A stretch of DNA of 64,000 nt, taken from Lepidodermella squamata. Lineage: Eukaryota > Animalia > Gastrotricha. A program made the translations under genes and the position numbers. The notes under the pieces were generated by a model. The model ran no database searches. It saw only the letters and a list, made by a program, of their open reading frames with translations, and had not been told where the DNA came from. Where the stretch lies: assembly GCA_047495785.1 (NCBI GenBank), contig JBLDXI010000013.1, positions 1,674,001 to 1,738,000 on the forward strand. Direction: 5' to 3'. Of the stretch, positions 10,886 to 33,350 are shown piece by piece (position 1 is the first letter of the stretch; every line of letters begins with the position of its first letter).

Positions 10886-13800
10886 CTAAGACCCAGTCGG
10901 CGCCTCTGACGACTGCCGGCCGCTCTGTTGGGGTGCAGGCCGCCTGCTGTTCTGACTTCCATTGCTGTTGTAGTAGCCACCCCGGCCGTTGCTTGGCGCA
11001 CCACGTCGCGGACCACCGTAACCGCTTTGCTGTTGCTGAGCCGCTGCGGATGAAACTGCACTTTGTTGCTGTGATTGTTGCGATTGCGGTTGTGAAGCAG
11101 GTGCGTTAACCGATGTCGTCGATGTTGCCGCAGATACGTTAGCAACCGAACCAGGAGAAGGAGAGGGCGCACCAGTTGGCGAGGCAGGGGGCGGAACTGC
11201 ACTACCTGCACGAGCACCGAGAATAGGCACCGCCTGAAAATTCAGTATAGCAATGTAATGATGAGTAATTCAGTGAGTCTGGGGGTCAATTTCGAACCTG
11301 ATCTGACGAGGAATTATCTGATGAGGCATTGTTAGATGAAGAGACTTGTTGAGAGGAGCCAGGAGCCGCTGGTTCCTTGCCACGCAGCATAGCCGCATAG
11401 CTGATTTGAGCGGGAGGTACGGTCTGAGCAAGTGATTGGGAAGCGTTCGAGTTGTTGTTGCTGTTGGTGGTCACCGTGGCCGAGGAAGAGTTGGACGAAG
11501 AGCGCCCGTCGCCAGACACCCGCGACTTGTTCGACGCTTCAGAAGCAGCAGTCACAGCCGCCGAGTTGTTGTTGCTGGTCGACGACGCCGAGGAACCGGG
11601 TTGCCGCGACCGCGTCAACGAGTCGGCGCGCGCGGGTGAGCGGCGGTCGATATCACTCGAGTTCGAAGCGAATTCAGCAGCGTGTTTGCTTGTCACTTGG
11701 TTCATGACTTGCACGGGGCTGGGTGATGGGGCACTCGGCGAGGGCGGGACCGGGGACGCCGATTGGGCCCGGTGCGACTGGGCCACCACTGACGCGGCGG
11801 TCGTCGGCACTGACTGTTGAGCTTGGCCTTGCTGTTGAGCGAGCTGCGGCGAGGAGCCACTCAATGCTGTTTGGCCGGGAGCTGCGTTGGTCGCCTCTAA
11901 AACCGGGAAGGATCCCGGATCTAGAATGAAAGATTGCTGATTTTGCATGCCACGACCACCGGAGCCACCCTGGTGTGACGCGCCTGATTGCGAATTCGGA
12001 GAGTTCAGGTCGCGATCACCATCGGCGCCCATCGATTTCGTCATGCGGTCGGAGCCAGTGCCCATGTGCCCGCCACGACCACCGCGCATAGAACTCGGGC
12101 CTCGACCAAACTGCGAAGAGCCTTGCAAACCATCACTTCCCATGCTACCGTCCATCGGCGGCCTTTGACCACGTTCGCCCTGAATAGGACCAGTTCGACC
12201 TCCTCGACCACCTCTCCGCTCACCCATGTAGCGACTAGTTCCTCGGTCCCTAAAATCAAAGACATAACTAATCATGATCAATAATTCAAAAATGATTAGG
12301 AAATTCACCTTTGGATCGGCTTTCCTCCCATAACACCGGTTCCGGAGGAAATACCGCCAACCATGGCACCACTCGGTGAAGAGCCCGAAGTAGAGCTGTA
12401 ACCACTGCTTTTGCCAGGTGAAACCGAAGTCCCGCCGCTTTGTGCGTTGCCGCGGCCGAGGGATCGTTGAGGATTTAACCCGCTTGGAGCGCCGTCTTCT
12501 TCACCGTGGTCCTGGTTGTTCTGGTTTGGCGCTCGCCTGTGGTAATGCTGATCTTCGCTGTTGTACGGACCCGGTTGCAACCGTTGCTGCGAGATGTCGA
12601 TAGGTGGCGGCATCGGAGGTGGATGCCGCGTTGGCCCCGATTGGTCGTAGAAATTATTCGAATCGCCTTGGCCTTGAAGATTTTGATTCTGAACACCGTA
12701 CGATTGTCGGTAACGGCCACCTTGCGATGAGCCCTGACGACTTCCCGACTGTTGACCAGTTTGTTGTTGTTGACCAGACTGTTGTTGACCGAAGCGATTG
12801 GCTTTAAATTATACAAAACAATTAGTTTATCGAATAGCAATCAACACCACAATAGCATGCCTACTTAAAAGCGCTTGACCACGTTAATTTATCTTCTGAT
12901 TTCTTTCAAAAGCACTGCTACGAACTTATTGCTCACGTTCAAGATGCGCTGCTTCACTTATTCTACTTGTATTCTCAGCGGCAGTTTCTTTAAAAAAATC
13001 AGCAACTATTCACGCGAACGAAAACACCAGATGGGTGACAAATTTACAGTTCAACTTTTATTCGTTTATTGAGATTAATGGAGGTTATACTTGTATAATT
13101 TAAGGATTATCAACACGGGTTAGCTAGACATACCACTGACTACAGCAGAGTTGCGATTAGGCTGCTGTTGATTTTGCTGGTTCTGCTGGGTCGCATACGC
13201 CGCTTGAGAACCCAGCATTTGAAGCTGTTGTTGCTGAGCATTAGCAGCCGCGTTTTGCTGCGCGGCAGCCACGTTCTGAATAGTTTGCTGCATAGTTTGA
13301 CCCTGGGCCGCCATTGCCATCGCGACCGCAGCAGCGGCGGCGGCCGGAGTGGTATACGAGCCGAAAAGATGAGGAGGGAACTGAGCGGCGATGAGCGGCG
13401 GCCTCGGACCCTGCTGACCCGGGGCAGAAGGAGCGAAAATTCTGGCACCGGCCTGACCAGCGAAGGCATTTTGCTGTTGACCGGCCTGATTTTGTCCCTG
13501 ATCGGCAGTGTTCGGGGCAGAGGCAGCTCCTGCCTGTCCACCTGATTGCTGCTGACCGCCCTGGGCGTTCCATCCAGCGTTACCTTGCCCGGCTTGGCTC
13601 GCGTTTTGCGCCGCGGCCTGTTGAGCAGCAGCTTGTTGCTGTTGCTGTTGTTGTTGTTGCTGCTGCTGCTGGTGATGCTGATAGAAATTCTGCTGTTGCT
13701 GAAGGGCAGCCAACATCAATTGAGGCTGCAGCTGAGCACCTTGCTGGAAGTACAGTTGCTGAAAAGCGGCTTGTGCATTGCTTTGAGCCTGGCTCGCAGC

Positions 13801-16800
13801 CGACTGAGCGCCGGGGAAGATTCCGGGAACTCCGGCAAAATATGCCTGACCCGCACCTGGTAAGAACTGACCAGGCCAGGTAGGGTACGTAGCGTAAATT
13901 TGCTGGGCAGCCGGAGCGGCTGACACGACCGCGGCAGGAGTTGCATTTGCCGGGGTCGGAGTGGTAGACGCCGAAGACTGAGCCGTTGAGTGGGAAACAC
14001 CCGGAGCAGCTGGGCCGAGGGAAGAACTTGTTCCGGATGAAACTGATGGCGGCGGTGTAGGAATAGCAGCGGGTATCACCGGGGCCGCGCCTGCAGCCAC
14101 CACCGCAGCCTGAGGAGCCGCAGCCACTGCAGCGGCAGCAGCCAGAGTTGAAACCACTGCGCCAGCAAGAGCAGGCGGCGGGGTGGTCGAGACCGGAATC
14201 GCAGGTACAACAACCGGCTGGACCAAACCGATGGCTGGCGAAAGTGCTGATGGAAGGCCCGGTGATGGCTCACCTGACGGTGGGTAACCCGGCCTGCTTG
14301 AACGCCTCGGGCCTGGAACGGTACCAGCAGCACCTGGCGGAATATTAGCGGCACCGGCTGCCGGCATTTGATAGGCAGCAGCCTTGATGCGAGCCTAAAA
14401 TAAAAGAAAAATCAATAAGGGATTTCAAAGCCGGATATTTTACTTACCCTGATCGGATTTCCAAGGAAAGTGACGACTTCCGTTCGCAAGTAATTGAGAG
14501 CTTGTTGCGCCTCGTGCTCGTCCTCAAATGTCAAATACCATGAATCCAAGTTAACGAAGGAGACTGAAATTGGCTTAGCCGGGCAGCTAGGATCTGCGAA
14601 CAAGTTTTCAATCGTTTCTTTCGGCGTATCAGGCGGCACCTCGCGCATAATAACAGTGCATCTCGAACGAGGGCGAACACGCACTTTTTGCTCGTCCTGG
14701 TCTAACTGAAGTACTTCCGACTCACGAAGAGCGTCAGCCAAAAAACTGATATCTTCCGTCAACTTCTTGACCCTTGGGAACTGAATAAGCTTATCGAGCG
14801 GCACGTACTTGTCAGCGTCCATCAACTCGGTGAGGTATTTATCGCGCGAGAGATTGTCTCTGGAAAAGTAGAACTCGACCTGTTGCCGCAGACGTTCCTT
14901 GATTTGAGCCGGAGTGGCATCGGGAGGCATGTCGTTCTGTTGCATGTCTGAGTCGGAATTGTTCGACGACACCGAGCCCGACGATCGCTGTTCGGCTATA
15001 CCCTGACCGCCGAGCGACACCGACAAATCGCCATTGGTTGAACCCGACGTATTATGCATCTGTGTCGAAGTCGACTTTACTGTGAACTGTCCACTGCCAC
15101 TGCTGGCTGGTTGCTCTGAACCATCGAAATTTGCGGAGACAGCAGGCAAATATGCTGTAAATAACAATGATTAAGGTGGAACTTGAAGAAAATGTGAGCA
15201 ATGACAAACCTGGTGACACCACTGGTTGCCCCGGGTTGAATGGATTCGTGATGACTTGAAGAGTAGGTGCAAGCAGGCCAGTCGCAGGCGCTGCGCCGGA
15301 TTGCTGAACTGCTGCGGCAGCGGCGGCGGCTGCGAACTGAGGCGGCAAGTACGATCCGTACACGGCTGGAATCGGTGTGAAAGGCACGGCCGGGACAGCG
15401 CCCGGAACTACGGCGGCGGCGCCTGGTGCGATCGGCGCGGCCGGAGTGAAGTTAATACCGGCGGCTCGAGCTGCGATTTGCGGAGGAGCCTGTGCGGAAA
15501 TAAAACGGAAATGCGTTATTAAGATTGAAGAAAACGCAAATCAGAACATTTAAAAAAATTTAAGTAATCACGTTATGTACCACGAGTACTGGCAGAGAAA
15601 AACAACGTGGCCCTGTGTTGGCAATGACTCTGAATAGAGGCTTCTGTGAGCTGGAAGAAGGCGCGACCGCGGCGAAAACGATTGAGGAACGACTCGAGCC
15701 GTTCGACCGGGTAAGGACGAATAGGTTAGTTGGAGGGGTTGGCGTGCTTTGGCCGAGCACTTTATACGCGCGCTCGGTATTGGGCACAGTCAGGAGCAGC
15801 ATGATTTCGGCAAGTTAGCGCATGTTTACGAATAAAAATAATCGCGAAATCGTGGACAAAATTTGCTACAATGGCCCAACTAAATTTCAAGTGGCTGATT
15901 TAACAAGACGAGCAACGGGCAGCAGCTAAATTTCAGCCGAGAGACAGTAATCCGTCTGAAGTCAAGCTCTTATTCCGTCACACAGGCTGTTATTTAGACA
16001 GAGGGATTGTTTGTTTATCTACCGCTACAAGCAGCCTCTCTTTGGGCCGCATGATATGTTTGCACAACAAAAGAGCCGCTCGCGCGCGTAACAATCGCAC
16101 CGACGCCACCTAGCGCTACGGTTAGAAGCCAATCCCCGGGACATATTAGGGACACACGGGCAATAAACGACCGCGCCTCCTTCCGCCTTTCGAACAGATT
16201 AGTATAGGTAAGAAATAAGTACCGAAGCCGGGTCTACGTCTTGGTGAGACGTTATGAAAGACTTGAAGGTGGCACCAACAGGCAGAGCGCCTTCAAAGAC
16301 AAGCCGACTAATCTGGTATTGTCGCAGGCAGATGATAACACTATTGGGAGACAGGTACATAATCTGGCCCGGTTTCAATACCGGCCAGTTTTGCATGTCT
16401 GCGGCATCGCGTTTCGACGCCGCAATCACGCTGGTCACATCGCCAACGATTGGGAATTTACTGTCAACGAGATCGTCACACGTAGATTTCACCGGTACCA
16501 CGAGTGTGGCGTTCGAAGCAAACTGATGAGATGATGATGATTGCAAGTTGTCGGCCGAAGTAAAACACGACTCAGGCCAGAAGAGCACCAATTTTTGAGA
16601 TAACAAAGAAGAGCTTTCGAAGCAAATGCATTCGCCGAGATCAGCAGTCGTCCCCTCGCTACTGTCACCCTCTTTAGTAGCAACAAGAGGGGGCTTACGC
16701 ATATCGTAGTAAAAACAATGCAGTAATAAACAACAAAAAGAAATAATAAAGGCGGAAGTGTGTTCTAAATGAAAAAATGAAGATGAAACTGATTCAAATT

Positions 16801-22440: not shown

Positions 22441-23134
22441 CTATTTCAGATGTCTTTACCCATGAACCAAGTCTCATAACCCAAGAAAAGGTAAACCGAC
22501 GAGAAGATCCGCTAAAATCGGAGCTACCGGATCTGTCATCTGGCGGTTGAATTAGTCGATGTTAAGCCGATAAACACGGTCAATGGCTAAAGGCTTTTTG
22601 TTTCATACAGAGCTCATACATAAAGTATGTCATCCGGCGTCATAGAATTCACTGACTGATCAAGTGTACTTCCGGATCTGGCGGTGAACCCATATTAACA
22701 AGCCGGCCGCTGGAGGGTTCCGGTAATCAATAAGGAATAAAATCTTCCCCAAAAATCCTTCACGAGGCCGATTAAATTATTTCGCGTAGGGATCCGATTA
22801 TCAACATATCTTCTTGGAAACCATATTCTCAAAATTTTACAAAAAGAAAAGCCTATTCACGACAATCAAAGGAACGTTGTACTAATGAAAAATCCATTAT
22901 TAGCAAGAAAAGCCTCCGTTTTATTTCTCAAAATGACTGAATCATAACAACATAAATTTTTTATAGCTTTGAGCATACAATCTCAGTTTCAACCATGAAT
23001 CAACCGATACTTTACAATCAATTGGTATGCTACATGGGATGGTTTTTTATTATCAAATTACAGAGATGTCACAGAAATTACAAAACCTTGTTGTATTAGT
23101 AAAAAATATGTTTCGCTTTCCGGCTCTCACCCAG

Positions 23135-25297
23135 TTACTGTTGAGCACATTGAATACGAACTGGCCGTCGACCGCCAGGCCCTCGTCTTCTGTTTTCGCC
23201 CTCGTCCTCTTCATCATCTTCATCTTCATCGTCACTGTCATCAAGTGATGAATCTGAATCTCGATCGCCGTTTTCATCTGGTTCATCATCATCGTCATCG
23301 TCGCTAACCAACTCATCAATATTTTCACCACGCGCGGCAGCTTGAGCTCGCATGTGACGCCTTCTTTCACGCTGCAAAGCTTCCATCAAAATCCATGCGA
23401 TCGACGGTAGCTGGCCATCACCATCATCATCGGCGAACGCAGATGTCCTGTTCTCCGCATTTTTCCGCGCTAGCTTTGTGACTTTTTCACACAATTCAGC
23501 GGAGTCAATCGGCGATGCTCGTTCCGGAGTCCAAATTTTGATATCATGGTCGAGACCGGAGGTTGCTAGGATAGGATCGAAGGGATGAGGTTCCAACACC
23601 TGTATAAACGTTGATGAAACCTTATCGGAACAGACCATAATCCAACTTACATTTACTACTCCACCATCATCCCCATGAAAAACATTGACAATCTTCCCGG
23701 TTTTAGTCTCCCAAACAAAGATGTGACCGCAGTCTGACCCAGAAACCACAAATTCGGAATGAGGTCCGTAGAAATTAACGCCTTTTACAGTGGCATAATT
23801 TCTATGACCTCGGAATCGCTGAATAGCATCTTCACCGTCGTTTTGATAAGACCCAAAGAGATAAATATCATCGTCATTGTAAGAACCAATAATCTGCTGT
23901 CCGTTGTTGCTGTAAACCGCGCAAGTCACATGCTTCGAGGTTCCATCATCATCTCCTAAAATAAATTGAAATCCCTGAGTCTATAAGTTGATTTATATTA
24001 CGATTGAGATGAGGAGGACAGAATTTTTTGGCGGGCCTGTCTGTTCCAGCATTTGAACCAGCCGCTGGGGAGGAGCAGTATCGGCGGTCATACACGCGGA
24101 CAAAAGGATCGCGACCAGACGTGAGAAATTCGTGCTCATTAACCGGGTTCGCGTGAATAGAGTAAAGAGGGATTCTAGCCTGGCGCTCCTTTGTATAAAA
24201 CATTTTAGTTGGCTTTTCTTCTCTGACATCGAACAAATAAACGGCAGCATCTTCTCCGCAAGAGTAGAAGGAATGCGGACAAGATGGATCGAGCGTTATT
24301 TTGTGAGCTGAGCCCCGATGCATTCCAAGGCGCCGGGTGTTGCGGCATTCTCCGCTCGTAGAAAGCTGAGCAAGCCGAATTTGACCTGGGATATTAACGT
24401 TAACGAATTAGTTCACTTAGCCAAAGAAACCCTAACGTACCATCACGCGCACAAGATACAATATGAAGATCTGATGAATGTGGCAAAAATTTCGATTGAA
24501 AAACGTTCGCTTGGTGACCGCTATCAAAACGACTGACCAAGCGTTTGCGAGCCCAATCCCAAATGATCACATGAAGATCGTCGGAACCGGATGCAATTAA
24601 TGAACCTATAAATTTTTCGTCAACACTCCTTTATAATTTTGGCTTAGGGCAAACCGGAATCGTTGAAATTAACAGCATTTACACAGCCTTCGTGCCGTTC
24701 TAGTTTGGCAGCCATTTTCCATTTGCTAATCATCCAAGCGCTTCCTTGGATGGCCAGACGCGGAACTTTGCTGATATCAGGTACATTTGGACGGCGGCCC
24801 AAGGCTCTTTTGATGTGCCACTCCAAGACCTTACTTGGTTTTGCAGTAGTGGATGTGAGTAAAGAAGAAGTCCAGGCGAGCGATGCATCTTGGGGCGCGT
24901 CCTCCTGCAGTCGACGGACGACTTCGTCAAGTTCCGACCCCCTGTCATCTTCTTCATCCGTGGTAGACAAAATGTCGTCACTGGTATTAATGATATCGTC
25001 AGAAAGGGCTTCTTCGTTATTTTGACGGGCTGGACTTTCTTCCATTACATCTGAAGATGATGAAGAGGTTTGGCGTGGTCGAACGCGTTTCCGAAGGTGT
25101 GACCTGTCGCGGAAATTGTTATCTGAAGTGGAGGTATTTTCAGGTTCGTTCATTTCAGCATTAGCACTGCCTGCATTCACTTCTGCACGAATGGGCGGTT
25201 CCGATGAATTTTCCCCAGTCAATGGTGCGCCAGCATCCGGCATAGGTTCAACCTCAGCTTCTACATTCTGGTCAAATTCATTTAAGTTATCTGCCAT
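23135..25297 (-). CDS. DCAF8: DDB1- and CUL4-associated factor 8 (WD40); exons 25297-24655, 24605-24441, 24385-24002, 23955-23651, 23599-23135 (~653 aa)
   Basis: Motifs [73 protein letters not shown] and LEPHP..PILATSGLDHDIKIW. Acidic N- and C-terminal regions. Introns of 49, 55, 46 and 51 nt. Confidence 0.92.
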
Positions 25298-25367
25298 TTT
25301 TAAGAGTCTATCAAATATAAAGAAATGATAATTCATAAGCTAGTGATTACATCTGCTGCCTGCATGA

Positions 25368-25373
25368 TTTATT
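25368..25373 (-). terminator. Polyadenylation signal AATAAA overlapping the WDR4 stop codon
   Basis: The minus strand reads GAC AAT GAA TAA ATC. This is the only canonical signal between WDR4 and DCAF8. Confidence 0.55.
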
Positions 25374-26565
25374 CATTGTCGCTATCCGAGCTAGAATCTG
25401 ACTGCCCTTGTTCAGTGCCATTAGCAGCAGCATTTTGCGACAGTTTAGCTAACTTTGCCTTCTTGCGCTTCTCAAAATATTCCGCAACATGTTGGTGAGG
25501 ATGCCGCTCAAGCCACAGGCGCGGTGCCCTCAACGAAAACGTCAACGACATGTTATTTGAAACAAAAAAGCTCTCCAGTGTCTTGAGGAGGCTAGCTGTC
25601 CGATCTGAAGCGCCGTAGCACCTCCACGGCCACACTGATTTCCCCGAGTTTCCATGTACCATCAGTAAAGAATTATCAGGCATTTTAGTCGCACAGCAAA
25701 TAGATGAGGTCGGCTCTTTAAAATCGGGAATCAGATCAGAAACCTTTTCAGTTTCGAAACTGAATGACTCTTCCCCTTCGGCAATCAGACTAAATCCGTA
25801 TAAATGAGTGGAATCCTCACCGGTGACCAGCCAGGTATACTTATGAGGCCCGCTGAGTAAACACACCAAACTTTTCGGTCGATTTTGACATAGAACGAAT
25901 GTGTTTTCGTCAAAAAGTGAAAGCTTGGCCAAACAAGATCCGTTGACGATGTTCCATAAACACACAGCACCATCTCCACCCAAACTCATGATGAAATTAG
26001 GCCATTTTTGACTATCAGGAAGCGACAATGCAACAATATATTGAGTGTGACCAAGGCAAACTTGGTGTAAATTGTGAGTAGCGGGGTAATGAAAAATTGA
26101 TAGCCGTCCATCACGATCCCCGACCGCTAAGTACTTCGCGCTCCCCGAACCGCACAAACTCAACGCCAACACGACTGCAACACGGCTACCGATTCCTATC
26201 GGTACCATGGACGGAGACTCCGATGAAAAAGAATCAGTAGATATCGCCCAAATGCAGCCGGATTTGTCACCGACAACTAACGTATCGCCTGAAACATTCC
26301 ACGATAAAGTTGAAACGTTTCTCTCGAGAGTTGCAGACAATTTGGACCATGAATTAGAGCTAGCTTCAAATGATAATACAGCAATTACTCGTTTGCTCGA
26401 AACTGCAACACGGCTGTGCTTGGAGTCGAAACTGACGCAATCAATTCCATCTGAGAAATCACTTCCAAGTTCCGGACGCTGAACACTTTCCTCACGAACA
26501 AAGAACAATGAGTCCCGAGAAACTACCGCAAGGCATGAACCGACTTCAAAGTAGTTTATGTCCAT
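25369..26565 (-). CDS. WDR4: WD repeat protein 4 / Trm82, non-catalytic subunit of the tRNA m7G methyltransferase; intronless, 398 aa
   Basis: Single long ORF. GDRDGRLSIFHYPATHNLHQVCLGHTQYIV resembles the WDR4 signature ADRDEKIRVS..P..IESFCLGHTEFV. Also SLGGDGAVCLWN and a C-terminal YFEKRKK. Confidence 0.8.
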   Translation of the reverse strand: MDINYFEVGSCLAVVSRDSLFFVREESVQRPELGSDFSDGIDCVSFDSKHSRVAVSSKRVIAVLSFEASSNSWSKLSATLERNVSTLSWNVSGDTLVVGDKSGCIWAISTDSFSSESPSMVPIGIGSRVAVVLALSLCGSGSAKYLAVGDRDGRLSIFHYPATHNLHQVCLGHTQYIVALSLPDSQKWPNFIMSLGGDGAVCLWNIVNGSCLAKLSLFDENTFVLCQNRPKSLVCLLSGPHKYTWLVTGEDSTHLYGFSLIAEGEESFSFETEKVSDLIPDFKEPTSSICCATKMPDNSLLMVHGNSGKSVWPWRCYGASDRTASLLKTLESFFVSNNMSLTFSLRAPRLWLERHPHQHVAEYFEKRKKAKLAKLSQNAAANGTEQGQSDSSSDSDNE

Positions 26566-27159
26566 TTATATTTTTGTAGCAGTGAACTACACAACTAGAG
26601 GTGGAAAAAACATCATTAGTTAGGCAGAAATATATGCAATGACAAATCCACATGCTACTTTCTAGTTTTCCTCCTCCTAAGCTTCCTATTCATATGGCAA
26701 ATGGCAAGTGTACTTTTCCACAGCCTCTCTATTTGTGCGACCCACGGCCCACAGGAAGGTGACAAAACTGCACATTTGATTTATAGCGCAGGCAAAAAAG
26801 GCAACACAATCAAACGCGCGCGGATCATTGCACGCAATCAGGCTCACATTAACATTTTTTCGGAAGGACTAGTGCGACAGATAACTTTGTAGAGACTGCA
26901 CCCTGCGCAATAAATAGCCGAACCGTGTCAAAAGGCTACAGTTGGCAGGCAACATCTACTCAAACAGCGACACGGCGACAAGTTCCTAGCCAAGCTGCGC
27001 GGGGTCATTGAAAAAATCGGGTCGAGCTGTGCGCCCGTTAAGCGCGGTCAGCTGATCAGTCTGTGAACCTTCACTTGTTTAATACGATTGAGATAACAGT
27101 AATTTTTAAATCGAAGATTTATATGTTATACAACAATTAGCTAAAAATCAGCTGATTTC

Positions 27160-27739
27160 AAAAAAATAAAAAATAAATAAAAGAGCGGTTCCATTTGAGT
27201 TTTGTTGGCCAGAGCAGCATCATTTCGTTGCAGCCTCGTCAGCGTCGCAGTGGTCTTATGGTCTTATGGCTCTTTGTCTAACCGGTCTCTTTCCGTGCCT
27301 TTGGATTTTGGATAGTCGGAAGGCCATCTGTGACGGGCTCATCGAATCTCGCGTTGGCTACTGCGAAATCTCCCTAGAAGTGTGTTCCGAGAAAGCAAGC
27401 GCTGAAGAAGCACAGCACCCCGGCATTGGATCACGTATCGCTCATGTTCTGCAGTAATGTAGGCATAATGAAGCCGGAAGTTTTCCAGTTGAGCCTTTAA
27501 TTCACGACCTTTGCTTTCCGGCAGACTGTGAACCTTCACTTCAACACCCTCAGCCATTCAGTTCTCCACCGCGGCACGACGGCGTGGAGTAGCGCCACTT
27601 ACTCAACATGAATTCGTCCCTTCAATTCATTCAGAAGGTGAAAAGGTCTTTATTTTGTCGCAAAGCCGCCTACCTGATGCAATTCTTTATCGAGCAGGTG
27701 TCCGAGCGAACCAGATAGATCATAGCTCTTTTTTATCAT
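27160..27739 (-). pseudogene. Possible decayed Qb-SNARE (VTI1/GOSR2-like) fragment
   Basis: The peptide VEVKVHSLPESKGRELKAQLENFR..LLQRLLSRNT resembles the VTI1 Habc C-terminal segment. Flanking frames are broken by stops and by an 8-bp duplication (CCATAAGA). Confidence 0.3.
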
Positions 27740-28065
27740 TTATTTCTAATTGGCAGTCCCTGCGCCTAACATCTAATTATCAGTGACAGGCTTTTCTCCC
27801 GTATCCCGTATCGCCGCTAGCCCTGTTGAATCAACAAAATTGGTAACAGGGTCTAGCATCCAGCCATCCACCGCTGGTGAACTCTGAGCGCTTCCTAAGC
27901 GACGCGGTGTGCGCAAAAGCTATACGCACACCACGACGCGTCCCTTTCGCGCCCATTGATTTGAGTTACTTTTTATCATGTTTGTTGTTATTTTTACATT
28001 GATTTGTTCGTGTTAGAAAGCATCGCTGGTCATAAGCTCGCTTATTATCCCAGGTTCAATTGGAA

Positions 28066-29873
28066 ATGTTACGCATTTGTTCATCATATAACATCGAGAG
28101 GCGGCTCTTTAGCCTGAAATCGATGTGGCTCGATGTCGTCAGTAAGCCACGGTTGGTCGATGGTCAGGGCGAGCTCCCTTTTATTGATAAGGAGTTTTGG
28201 AAGAAGAATGCCTCTCTCTCTGCAAAAATATCCGCATTGAAGCGTCCTGTGCAAGATCAGCGTGTTGGTATATTAACTGGAAATAATCGTGAATTTCTGT
28301 CATCGATATTTGCTACATGGATAAGCGGAAAATCAGCTGTTCCCATGAGTGCCTCTCATCCTTTGCCCCAATTACAATATTATCTGGAAGATTCCGGCGC
28401 CAATATAATTTTAACGGACAGGAATAACAGAGAGCTTGCATTCAGACTCCAAAATTCAGCTAAGGACAGAAATATCGAGGTGATCGTAACGGAAGATTGC
28501 CCCACTATATCCAAGGCTGAATTCTTCATCGCAAATGCTGGCAAAATGTTTCAGATCGGCGAAAATTCCGAAGCAGTTATCCTATATACGAGCGGAACTA
28601 CCGGCAAACCGAAAGGTGTCAGCTTATCTATGAGAAACATCGCTACCCAGGTTCATGCGCAAGCTAAAGCCTGGAAATGGTCTTCTAGTGATATCGTATT
28701 ACACACGTTGCCGCTGTATCATACACACGGATTAGTAAATGCTTTTTTAACGCCAATTTTTCTTGGCGCAGCCGTTGTTATGAGACCTCGCTTTGACGAA
28801 GAAGAGGTAAGTAAAGCTGCAATTCACTTTCAATGTTGCATTGAAATTTTATCGCTATCAGGTTTTCAAGTATTTGACTGCCGAAAAAGTGACTCAAAGA
28901 GGTCCTGTCACTGTTTTCACCGGCGTTCCCACCATGTATTCCAAGCTGCTGGATTACATGCGGAAATCGAAACAATCGAATGTCAAAAGCAGACTTAGAA
29001 ATATTCGACTCCTAATGTCAGGAAGTGCCCCTCTATCCGAATCGGTAAAATTGCACGTTTTTGATCGCCATTTGATATATGATTTATTTAGTTGGCGAAA
29101 GATTGGCATGATGAAACCGGAGTTCAACTACTTGAGCGTTATGGCTGCACCGAAACAGGAATGGTTTTGACAAACCCACTTGAGGGTCGTCGCAATATTG
29201 GTAAAATTGTCCACCCAACTTTCACAATTTTCCATTTAACAAAATGTTTGAAGGTTACGTTGGAATGCCATTCGATACTGTAAATGTACGTTTGGTACAC
29301 AGCCAAACTGGAAAAGTAATTCTCTCAGCCGACGGTACGGGGGTGAAATCCATGGTCCCCGATGAAAAAGACGACTTTGCCGAGCTTCAAGTTTCTGGAC
29401 CAAGCGTATTTTCGCGGTATATCAACCGAGACAGGGAAACATCCGATGCGTTCGCCGTGGACCCGGACGGTACAAGGTGGTACAAGACTGGAGATTGCGT
29501 ATCGTTCTCAAACGAGTTGAATAGCTTCAAAATAAACGGCCGAGCCTCTGCTGATGTGATCAAAAGTGGCGGATACAAAATCAGCGCATTAGACATTGAG
29601 ACCAAATTGGGTGAACATGACCAAATTAAAGAATGTGCTGTGTTCGGCATCCCAGATCCTAAATGGGGAGAGCGAATTGTTCTGATAACTCAGCTTAACC
29701 ACACCAATGAACCTTTCGACCTCGAAACGTTGAAGGCCTGGTGCAAGTCTCGAATGCCACATTATTGGACTCCGACTGAGCTAATTGTGCTGGACAAGCC
29801 AATTCCTCGAAATGCCATGGGTAAAGTCAACAAAAAAGAACTGCGAAACATCTTCTTTCCGCCGAAGAATTAG
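28066..29873 (+). CDS. ACSF3: Acyl-CoA synthetase family member 3 (malonyl-CoA synthetase-like, probably mitochondrial); exons 28066-28806, 28862-29044, 29092-29200, 29254-29873 (~550 aa)
   Basis: AMP-binding motif [12 protein letters not shown], plus [66 protein letters not shown] and [12 protein letters not shown]. Introns of 55, 47 and 53 nt. Confidence 0.9.
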
Positions 29874-32222: not shown

Positions 32223-33350
32223 GTTTCTTCACTACCTTTTAAGCAGGCCTAAATAATTGATGTGGTGAATGTAATGCAATTACACGCAGAAAAAACTGAG
32301 CAGTATACGAAAGTGCATGTGAAATGGCTAATAATAATAATAATTTTATCAGCATACGATAATGTGAGAAATGAGACACCTGTGTTCGCACTTACCTAAA
32401 GGCCGCCCAAAAGGCGAAACAAAAGAATACCTGAGCACTGAGAAGGGCGTTACGAATCTTGACTGTCCTGTGGCTATTGTTAGTATTTGTTTGGCGCGCA
32501 TAACTCGAGGATTATAAACAAAGTTACGAAGATCGCGCGACGGGGCACGCAAGTCTATTCCGTTGTTGCCCTTGGATGCGCTTGATTTGCAAGGAGAGCG
32601 CCCGCCCGGTCGGGTGTTCCTTCTGGATCGGATTAGGCAAAGAAAACGAACAAGGCGACGGTTGATTTCAGCGCATAGCAATTAGACAGAAACTGGTTTG
32701 TTGTTAGACTGGGCCCGCATCTGTACCTACCGCCACCACCACTACTGCTGCTGCTGCACTGCTACTAGTGAGAGGCGGGGGCACAGATGGCCTTGGGCTT
32801 CAGACTGACCGGAAGTATAACACATCGTATGCTATTATATATATGTAATAACAGCAAAAGGCAAACACCAAATTAAATTGGCTAGCATGCAAAGACGCGC
32901 TCCATTCACGCAAATTATTGAGAATAACTTGCATATTGCTATACTAATAAGGCGGTAATGCTCACGGAATTTTATTATACTACTGCTGGTAGTTGTTATT
33001 AAAAATATGGATGAGATCTGTAACTATCCTCGCTCAGTGTTTACCCTGCCACATTCGACAGTTCTTTCCTCGCATTATTACTAGCAATTACAATGCCAAT
33101 ACAGCATTACAAGCGGCAAAGTGATAAAGGCCCTGTTTACCAATCGCCTCGGAAAAACAAGACAGCTATCGTATTAATACCAACAAAGCAGAACGGAGAT
33201 ATTTGTATATAAAAAGAAAGAGACGTGTGGAAATTCAGTAGCGGTTATCGGTAATTTTTTTACCTCTACTACAGCACTGCAGCCTGTTCAGGCTAATGGC
33301 ATTTTACCGTAGAAAAAATCGACATGTAGTGACTTTGATAAACCCAACTA

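Follow-up and report, generated by a model that had tools for sequence, protein, structure and literature searches.

WDR4 and DCAF8 as a candidate operon

On balance we favour the view that WDR4 and DCAF8, two neighbouring minus-strand genes of the gastrotrich Lepidodermella squamata, form a two-gene animal operon that is resolved by a spliced leader (SL). Both genes lie in a 64,000-nucleotide (nt) stretch of DNA (contig JBLDXI010000013.1, positions 1,674,001 to 1,738,000; hereafter the window), for which an earlier note had proposed such a unit. Transcription would begin above 26600, in the divergent region 5' of WDR4, and then cross both genes. The WDR4 message would be cleaved and polyadenylated ~20-40 nt after an AATAAA at its stop, and DCAF8 would receive its capped 5' end from a short spliced leader trans-spliced to the AG at 25309-25308. 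The mature DCAF8 mRNA would thus open at 25307, leaving 10 nt in front of its ATG and excluding the in-frame ATG at 25336. Co-transcription and leader addition are what we infer; what was observed directly is the anatomy of the pair, its introns, roughly where its RNAs begin and end, and a layout that is conserved. The features of the pair and its surroundings are as follows.

25369..26565, minus strand: WDR4/Trm82-like gene, a single exon of 398 amino acids without introns, stop TAA at 25371-25369 (open reading frame (ORF) list)
25298..25368, minus strand: 71-nt spacer from the WDR4 stop to the DCAF8 ATG (sequence; also covered by the DNA run X2)
25368..25373 (25373-25368), minus strand: AATAAA sharing bases with the WDR4 stop codon (sequence)
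25308..25325, minus strand: candidate trans-splice acceptor TTTCTTTATATTTGATAG, a T-rich tract (13 pyrimidines of 18) followed by the AG at 25309-25308
25345..25350, minus strand: donor-like hexamer GTAATC of a rival cis intron, giving a 43-nt GT..AG interval with the AG at 25308
26595..26614, minus strand: candidate acceptor of the first gene, a pyrimidine tract (14 of 18) plus AG (gatgttttttccacctctAG), 29 nt 5' of the WDR4 ATG
26566..28065, no strand assigned: divergent 1.5-kb region from the WDR4 ATG to a plus-strand acyl-CoA synthetase gene (ATG 28066), the presumed promoter region of the pair

The layout given in the earlier note was borne out at every coordinate. Both genes are on the minus strand with 71 nt (25298-25368) between them, an AATAAA overlaps the WDR4 stop (25373-25368), and a pyrimidine tract with an AG, TTTCTTTATATTTGATAG, stands 10 nt before the DCAF8 ATG (25297). 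An exon that follows this AG would open at 25307 with ACTCTTAAAAATGGC, the letters on the DCAF8 side of the predicted leader junction. Another in-frame ATG (25336) lies 5' of the acceptor and is taken as the start of DCAF8 in the mechanical ORF list. The confirmed cis introns of DCAF8 have poorer tracts (8-12 pyrimidines) than the candidate acceptor.

RNA boundaries at the two genes

Three public sequencing runs match the stretch. X1 and X3 are complementary DNA (cDNA), since the four splice joints of DCAF8 are present in them, and X2 is DNA and heterozygous. X1 is a SMART-type library, as the oligo appears in a loose end at 27542. All of the RNA data are contigs, which are blind to a leader of a few letters, to a poly(A) tail and to a rare precursor, and in which coverage holes prove nothing.

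The 5'-most DCAF8 cDNA contig (X1 record 3, 276 nt) aligned over 25032-25300 and carried seven further letters, so that it starts at 25307 if these are colinear, or one letter further upstream if it carries the allele with a 1-nt shorter A-run. With either allele, the 5' boundary of DCAF8 RNA and the predicted exon start (25307) lie no more than ~1 nt apart. Over the bin 25272-25438 X1 had a depth of 15.4, exactly the contribution of records 3 and 4, showing that no longer X1 contig extends upstream over the spacer. At WDR4, cDNA contigs span 25347-26596. The earlier note had expected a WDR4 poly(A) site about 10-30 nt past the stop; the X3 contig of WDR4 (record 15) stops at 25347, 21 nt past the AATAAA, but no poly(A) tail is visible on it. 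At the 5' end of WDR4, the X1 contig (record 5) aligns as far as 26596 and has 2 letters more, an end that lies beside the pyrimidine tract and AG of ttttttccacctctAG (AG at 26596-26595). RNA depth was nil from 26608 to 27275. The stronger item of evidence is an RNA 5' boundary that meets the predicted acceptor of DCAF8, together with a similar coincidence at WDR4.

The same contigs bear on the alternative raised in the earlier note, a 43-nt cis intron running from GTAATC at 25350 to the AG at 25308, which would yield a bicistronic WDR4-DCAF8 mRNA with DCAF8 translated by reinitiation or internal entry. The interval is present in the sequence, its length is just under the 46-55 nt of the confirmed introns, the donor resembles the GTAATA of intron 3, and the diverged relative described below also has a GTAAAT 10 nt after the WDR4 stop, with an AG 56 nt later. 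The RNA contigs, however, gave it no support. X3 record 15 passes through GTAATC (25350-25345) unspliced to its end at 25347, a 25351/25307 joint is listed in neither X1 nor X3, unlike the four true introns, and the DCAF8 contig halts at the acceptor and does not run into WDR4. Furthermore, efficient translation of a 653-codon ORF behind a 398-codon ORF would be unusual. We consider this explanation very improbable.

At 25187-25297, X2 is heterozygous for a haplotype that differs by nine substitutions in a cluster and, in the A-run ahead of the DCAF8 ATG, by the loss of 1 nt. The cDNA run X1, which is filed under a different organism label, bears the same haplotype, and the two labels probably denote one highly heterozygous species.

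Conservation of the layout in a diverged relative

The adjacency of WDR4 and DCAF8 in other genomes, a check proposed in the earlier note, was found in a deeply diverged relative but not in Capitella. An exhaustive HMMER search of 1.84 billion representative proteins with WDR4 gave a single relative with an E-value under 1e-30, indicating that the lineage is very poorly sampled. A word-based homologue search with WDR4 returned no match at E 1e-5 or better, the exact WDR4 protein is not on record in public assemblies, and a scan of JGI metagenomes with the WDR4 alignment returned pattern matches and no true relative. This one relative was traced to metagenome contigs of three samples (L001, L002 and L004), in all of which WDR4 is followed by DCAF8 on one strand, with 95 nt from stop to ATG. 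Its spacer contains cacgttttgtttAG (ttgtttAG) 30 nt before the DCAF8 ATG, which aligns with the acceptor of the window; the remaining spacer could not be aligned between the two, except beside the stop.

With DCAF8 set as plus, the gene order on L001 is MFS transporter (+), acyl-CoA synthetase (-), DUF1295 (-), WDR4 (+) and DCAF8 (+). In the window these genes, apart from DUF1295, follow one another in the same order and relative orientations, and no DUF1295 match was found anywhere in the 64 kb. Protein identities between the window and the relative are 52-87% for MFS, 52-62% for the synthetase, 35% for WDR4 (full length) and 39-70% for DCAF8. As the DUF1295 neighbour differs, the WDR4-DCAF8 linkage appears from the gene orders to have been kept beyond background synteny, with the caveat of a four-gene syntenic block. 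The DCAF8 gene of Capitella has a lipase gene upstream of it, on the opposite strand, and WDR4 is absent from the surrounding 10 kb, so the linkage is lineage-specific. Logan RNA contigs of the best unnamed DCAF8 match (L005-L008) were set aside, as they come from an unrelated animal and show a 260-340-nt 5' untranslated region (UTR) without WDR4 upstream.

Two further observations were made on the contigs of the relative. The DUF1295 gene of L001 (4776-5684, minus) shares a strand with the synthetase gene, which it precedes by 134 nt, forming another operon-like pair, and is ~400 nt from WDR4; judging from the two gene orders, it has been gained or lost between the window and the relative. 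The final codons of WDR4, AGC GAC AAT (S-D-N), and the bases flanking the stop are identical in the window (25374-25385) and L001 (7254-7265), with the remaining acidic tail of WDR4 unalignable between both species. This kept end may be a conserved C-terminal motif or a piece of the 3'-end signal.

Possible trans-splicing and the source of the DCAF8 transcript

The acyl-CoA synthetase and MFS genes, too, showed a pyrimidine tract plus AG 4-27 nt before the ATG; these sites, which come from the window and/or the relative, are as follows.

Window 28040-28068 and 32223-32260: tract plus AG at the synthetase and MFS genes
L001 780-811: tract plus AG in the relative

Such sites before several ATGs in both species would suit a genome that trans-splices widely. 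Rfam gave no family over the whole window, which thus holds no recognizable SL RNA gene, and among the papers searched none tied gastrotrichs to spliced leaders. The genome of Dimorphilus has been reported to be without trans-splicing (PMC7854359).

No AG was found within 60 nt of the WDR4 ATG in the relative, and trans-splicing therefore need not apply to every gene. This is in keeping with a second alternative, namely that WDR4 and DCAF8 are ordinary separate genes of a compact genome and that DCAF8 has a conventional capped start at ~25307-25320 with no leader. The DCAF8 cDNA contig merely ends near 25307 with no leader visible, contig ends in a SMART-type library such as X1 can mark true 5' ends, and the acceptor motif is statistically unremarkable. 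On the other hand, the contig end meets the AG within ~1 nt, and a second such coincidence would have to be accepted at the 5' end of WDR4. A TATA-driven start in the spacer was rejected, since the start set by the one TATA-like element present (TATATTT, 25322-25316) would fall 3' of the ATG. Taking these points together, we regard a conventional start as improbable.

Several results weigh against the operon that we favour. Its acceptor motif alone is weak and no better than chance, as at least 13 pyrimidines in the 18 nt before an AG were found in 18% of random 71-nt windows of the same sequence. No RNA contig of X1 or X3 covers 25301-25346, where contigs could not show a precursor anyway. 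No leader was seen on DCAF8, the contig bearing at most seven unaligned letters. X1 is likewise without contigs where the final 57 nt of WDR4 coding sequence lie, and the coverage gaps are thus partly technical. The letters 5' of the exon start differ in number, 0-1 at DCAF8 and ~4 at WDR4, which does not readily fit a single shared leader. Finally, the entire four-gene block (MFS, acyl-CoA synthetase, WDR4 and DCAF8) is syntenic, so the kept adjacency is no specific sign of an operon. What stands of the operon interpretation is that RNA boundaries fall at the acceptor and past the AATAAA and that the layout is kept in the relative, although neither a leader nor a read-through precursor was seen.

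These results would also be explained if DCAF8 were trans-spliced at 25307 but transcribed from its own promoter inside WDR4, the leader replacing a short outron. In that case the two genes would be close-packed neighbours, or else a hybrid operon carrying an internal promoter, and not an operon of the simple type. Such a promoter fits the RNA boundary at the acceptor equally well, the habit of placing an acceptor before the ATG is found even in genes heading the divergent region (acyl-CoA synthetase and WDR4), and no read-through RNA contig was seen in X1 or X3. Internal promoters are established for operons of C. elegans. However, the promoter would have to sit in fast-evolving coding sequence, WDR4 being 35% identical to that of the relative, the spacer is unalignable save for the stop region and the acceptor, and the tight spacing has been kept across a deep divergence. 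We consider an internal promoter rather unlikely, and retain the simple SL-resolved operon as our preferred reading.

Identity and structure of the two genes

The names given to the two genes in the earlier note hold. A single-sequence PDB search with the WDR4 ORF gave human WDR4 (1.6e-10) and yeast Trm82 (5e-7) as top matches. A two-sequence profile built from the window protein and the orthologue of the relative gave Trm82 at 1.4e-14 and WDR4 at 3e-11, with other natural WD40 proteins at 3.7e-5 or weaker and only the designed WD40 protein Ika8 nearer (9.5e-8). Pfam returned generic propeller matches only. Among characterised proteins, the nearest to the first ORF, a WD40 propeller of ~400 amino acids, are thus WDR4 and Trm82. 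For DCAF8, which was searched exon by exon, the final exons matched the human DCAF8 structure 9u7t at 6e-46. The named homologues of these final exons are DCAF8/WDR42A at 45-60% identity, in annelid, mollusc, arthropod and vertebrate alike, and the second gene is orthologous in sequence to DCAF8 (WDR42A) across the WD40 domain. Its features are as follows.

24655..25297, minus strand: DCAF8 exon 1, ATG at 25297 (X1 joint; tblastn with the DCAF8 of the relative)
24441..24605, minus strand: DCAF8 exon 2 (X1 joints; GT..AG ends)
24002..24385, minus strand: DCAF8 exon 3 (X1 joints; WD40 matches; 70% identity to the relative)
23651..23955, minus strand: DCAF8 exon 4 (X1 and X3 joints; match to the human DCAF8 structure)
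23135..23599, minus strand: DCAF8 exon 5, stop TAA at 23137-23135 (cDNA joints)
22919..23134, minus strand: DCAF8 3' UTR, AATAAA at 22925-22920 (cDNA contigs to 22976 in X1 and to 22919 in X3)

The four introns (24606-24654, 24386-24440, 23956-24001 and 23600-23650; 49, 55, 46 and 51 nt respectively) are all GT..AG and confirmed by cDNA. The exons were joined solely for the codon and stop count, and the five total 653 codons with zero internal stops. The last intron is 51 nt long, in frame and stop-free, so the ORF finder runs through it; its retention would insert 17 residues into the WD40 domain.

The established role of WDR4 is that of cofactor to the tRNA methyltransferase METTL1, which a member of the WDR4/Trm82 class would bind in support of m7G46 tRNA methylation. 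Animal operons, moreover, rarely group related functions. The earlier note had said that both proteins have been described as DDB1-CUL4 substrate receptors (cullin-RING ligase 4, CRL4) and that the linkage could therefore be functional. Nothing that we found supports this suggestion and a functional CRL4 link of the pair is speculative. One review describes WDR4 as a METTL1 cofactor and contains nothing quotable on WDR4 as a CRL4 receptor (PMC13587420).

Other features of the window

The divergent region between WDR4 and the acyl-CoA synthetase gene contains a 20-nt direct repeat, CAGTCTGTGAACCTTCACTT, in two copies 95% alike (27057-27076 and 27522-27541) and 465 nt apart. The loose end with the SMART oligo at 27542 directly follows the second copy. 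Low-level transcription was seen at 27199-27600, where X1 has joints between opposite strands (27307/27420 and 27359/27471), and this stretch may be a small transcribed element or a hairpin RNA. Elsewhere in the window, a GC-rich island at 12000-16000 (53% compared with a window mean of 43%) contains a minus-strand ORF of 415 amino acids (13120-14367) rich in Q, A and P. The ORF upstream of it (14412-15167) would, by the look of its sequence, encode a La/LARP-type RNA-binding protein.

Comparison with known operon systems and implications

The arrangement resembles the short-spacer SL operons of tunicates (Ciona and Oikopleura) and flatworms in that the genes share one strand, the spacer is well below 100 nt, an upstream poly(A) signal lies near the downstream acceptor, first and downstream genes apparently use one class of acceptor, and the genes are functionally unrelated housekeeping genes. 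It differs from them in its lineage, which is poorly sampled, and in that leader addition and the precursor are here inferred. With the SL2-type operons of C. elegans it would share the model of upstream 3'-end formation coupled to downstream trans-splicing, and a linkage conserved between species. C. elegans operons, however, typically have ~100 nt from the poly(A) site to the acceptor, a U-rich element and a dedicated SL2, whereas the distance here is ~40 nt (from 25347 to the acceptor).

By itself the pair adds little to the knowledge of animal operons, and is a convenient target for reverse-transcription PCR or rapid amplification of cDNA ends. It is possible, though we hold this only tentatively, that WDR4-DCAF8 is a true SL-resolved operon of a gastrotrich that has been kept since the split from the relative with the 35% identical WDR4. 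If so, the pair would rank with the first operons described from the gastrotrich phylum, in which no spliced-leader trans-splicing is known to have been published, and would be evidence that operon linkage there is ancient. If confirmed, the pair would provide a clean and small test case for how polycistronic transcripts are resolved in an under-studied animal lineage, with two genes, a 71-nt spacer, a defined poly(A) signal and acceptor, and a kept layout that allows spacing and signals to be compared.

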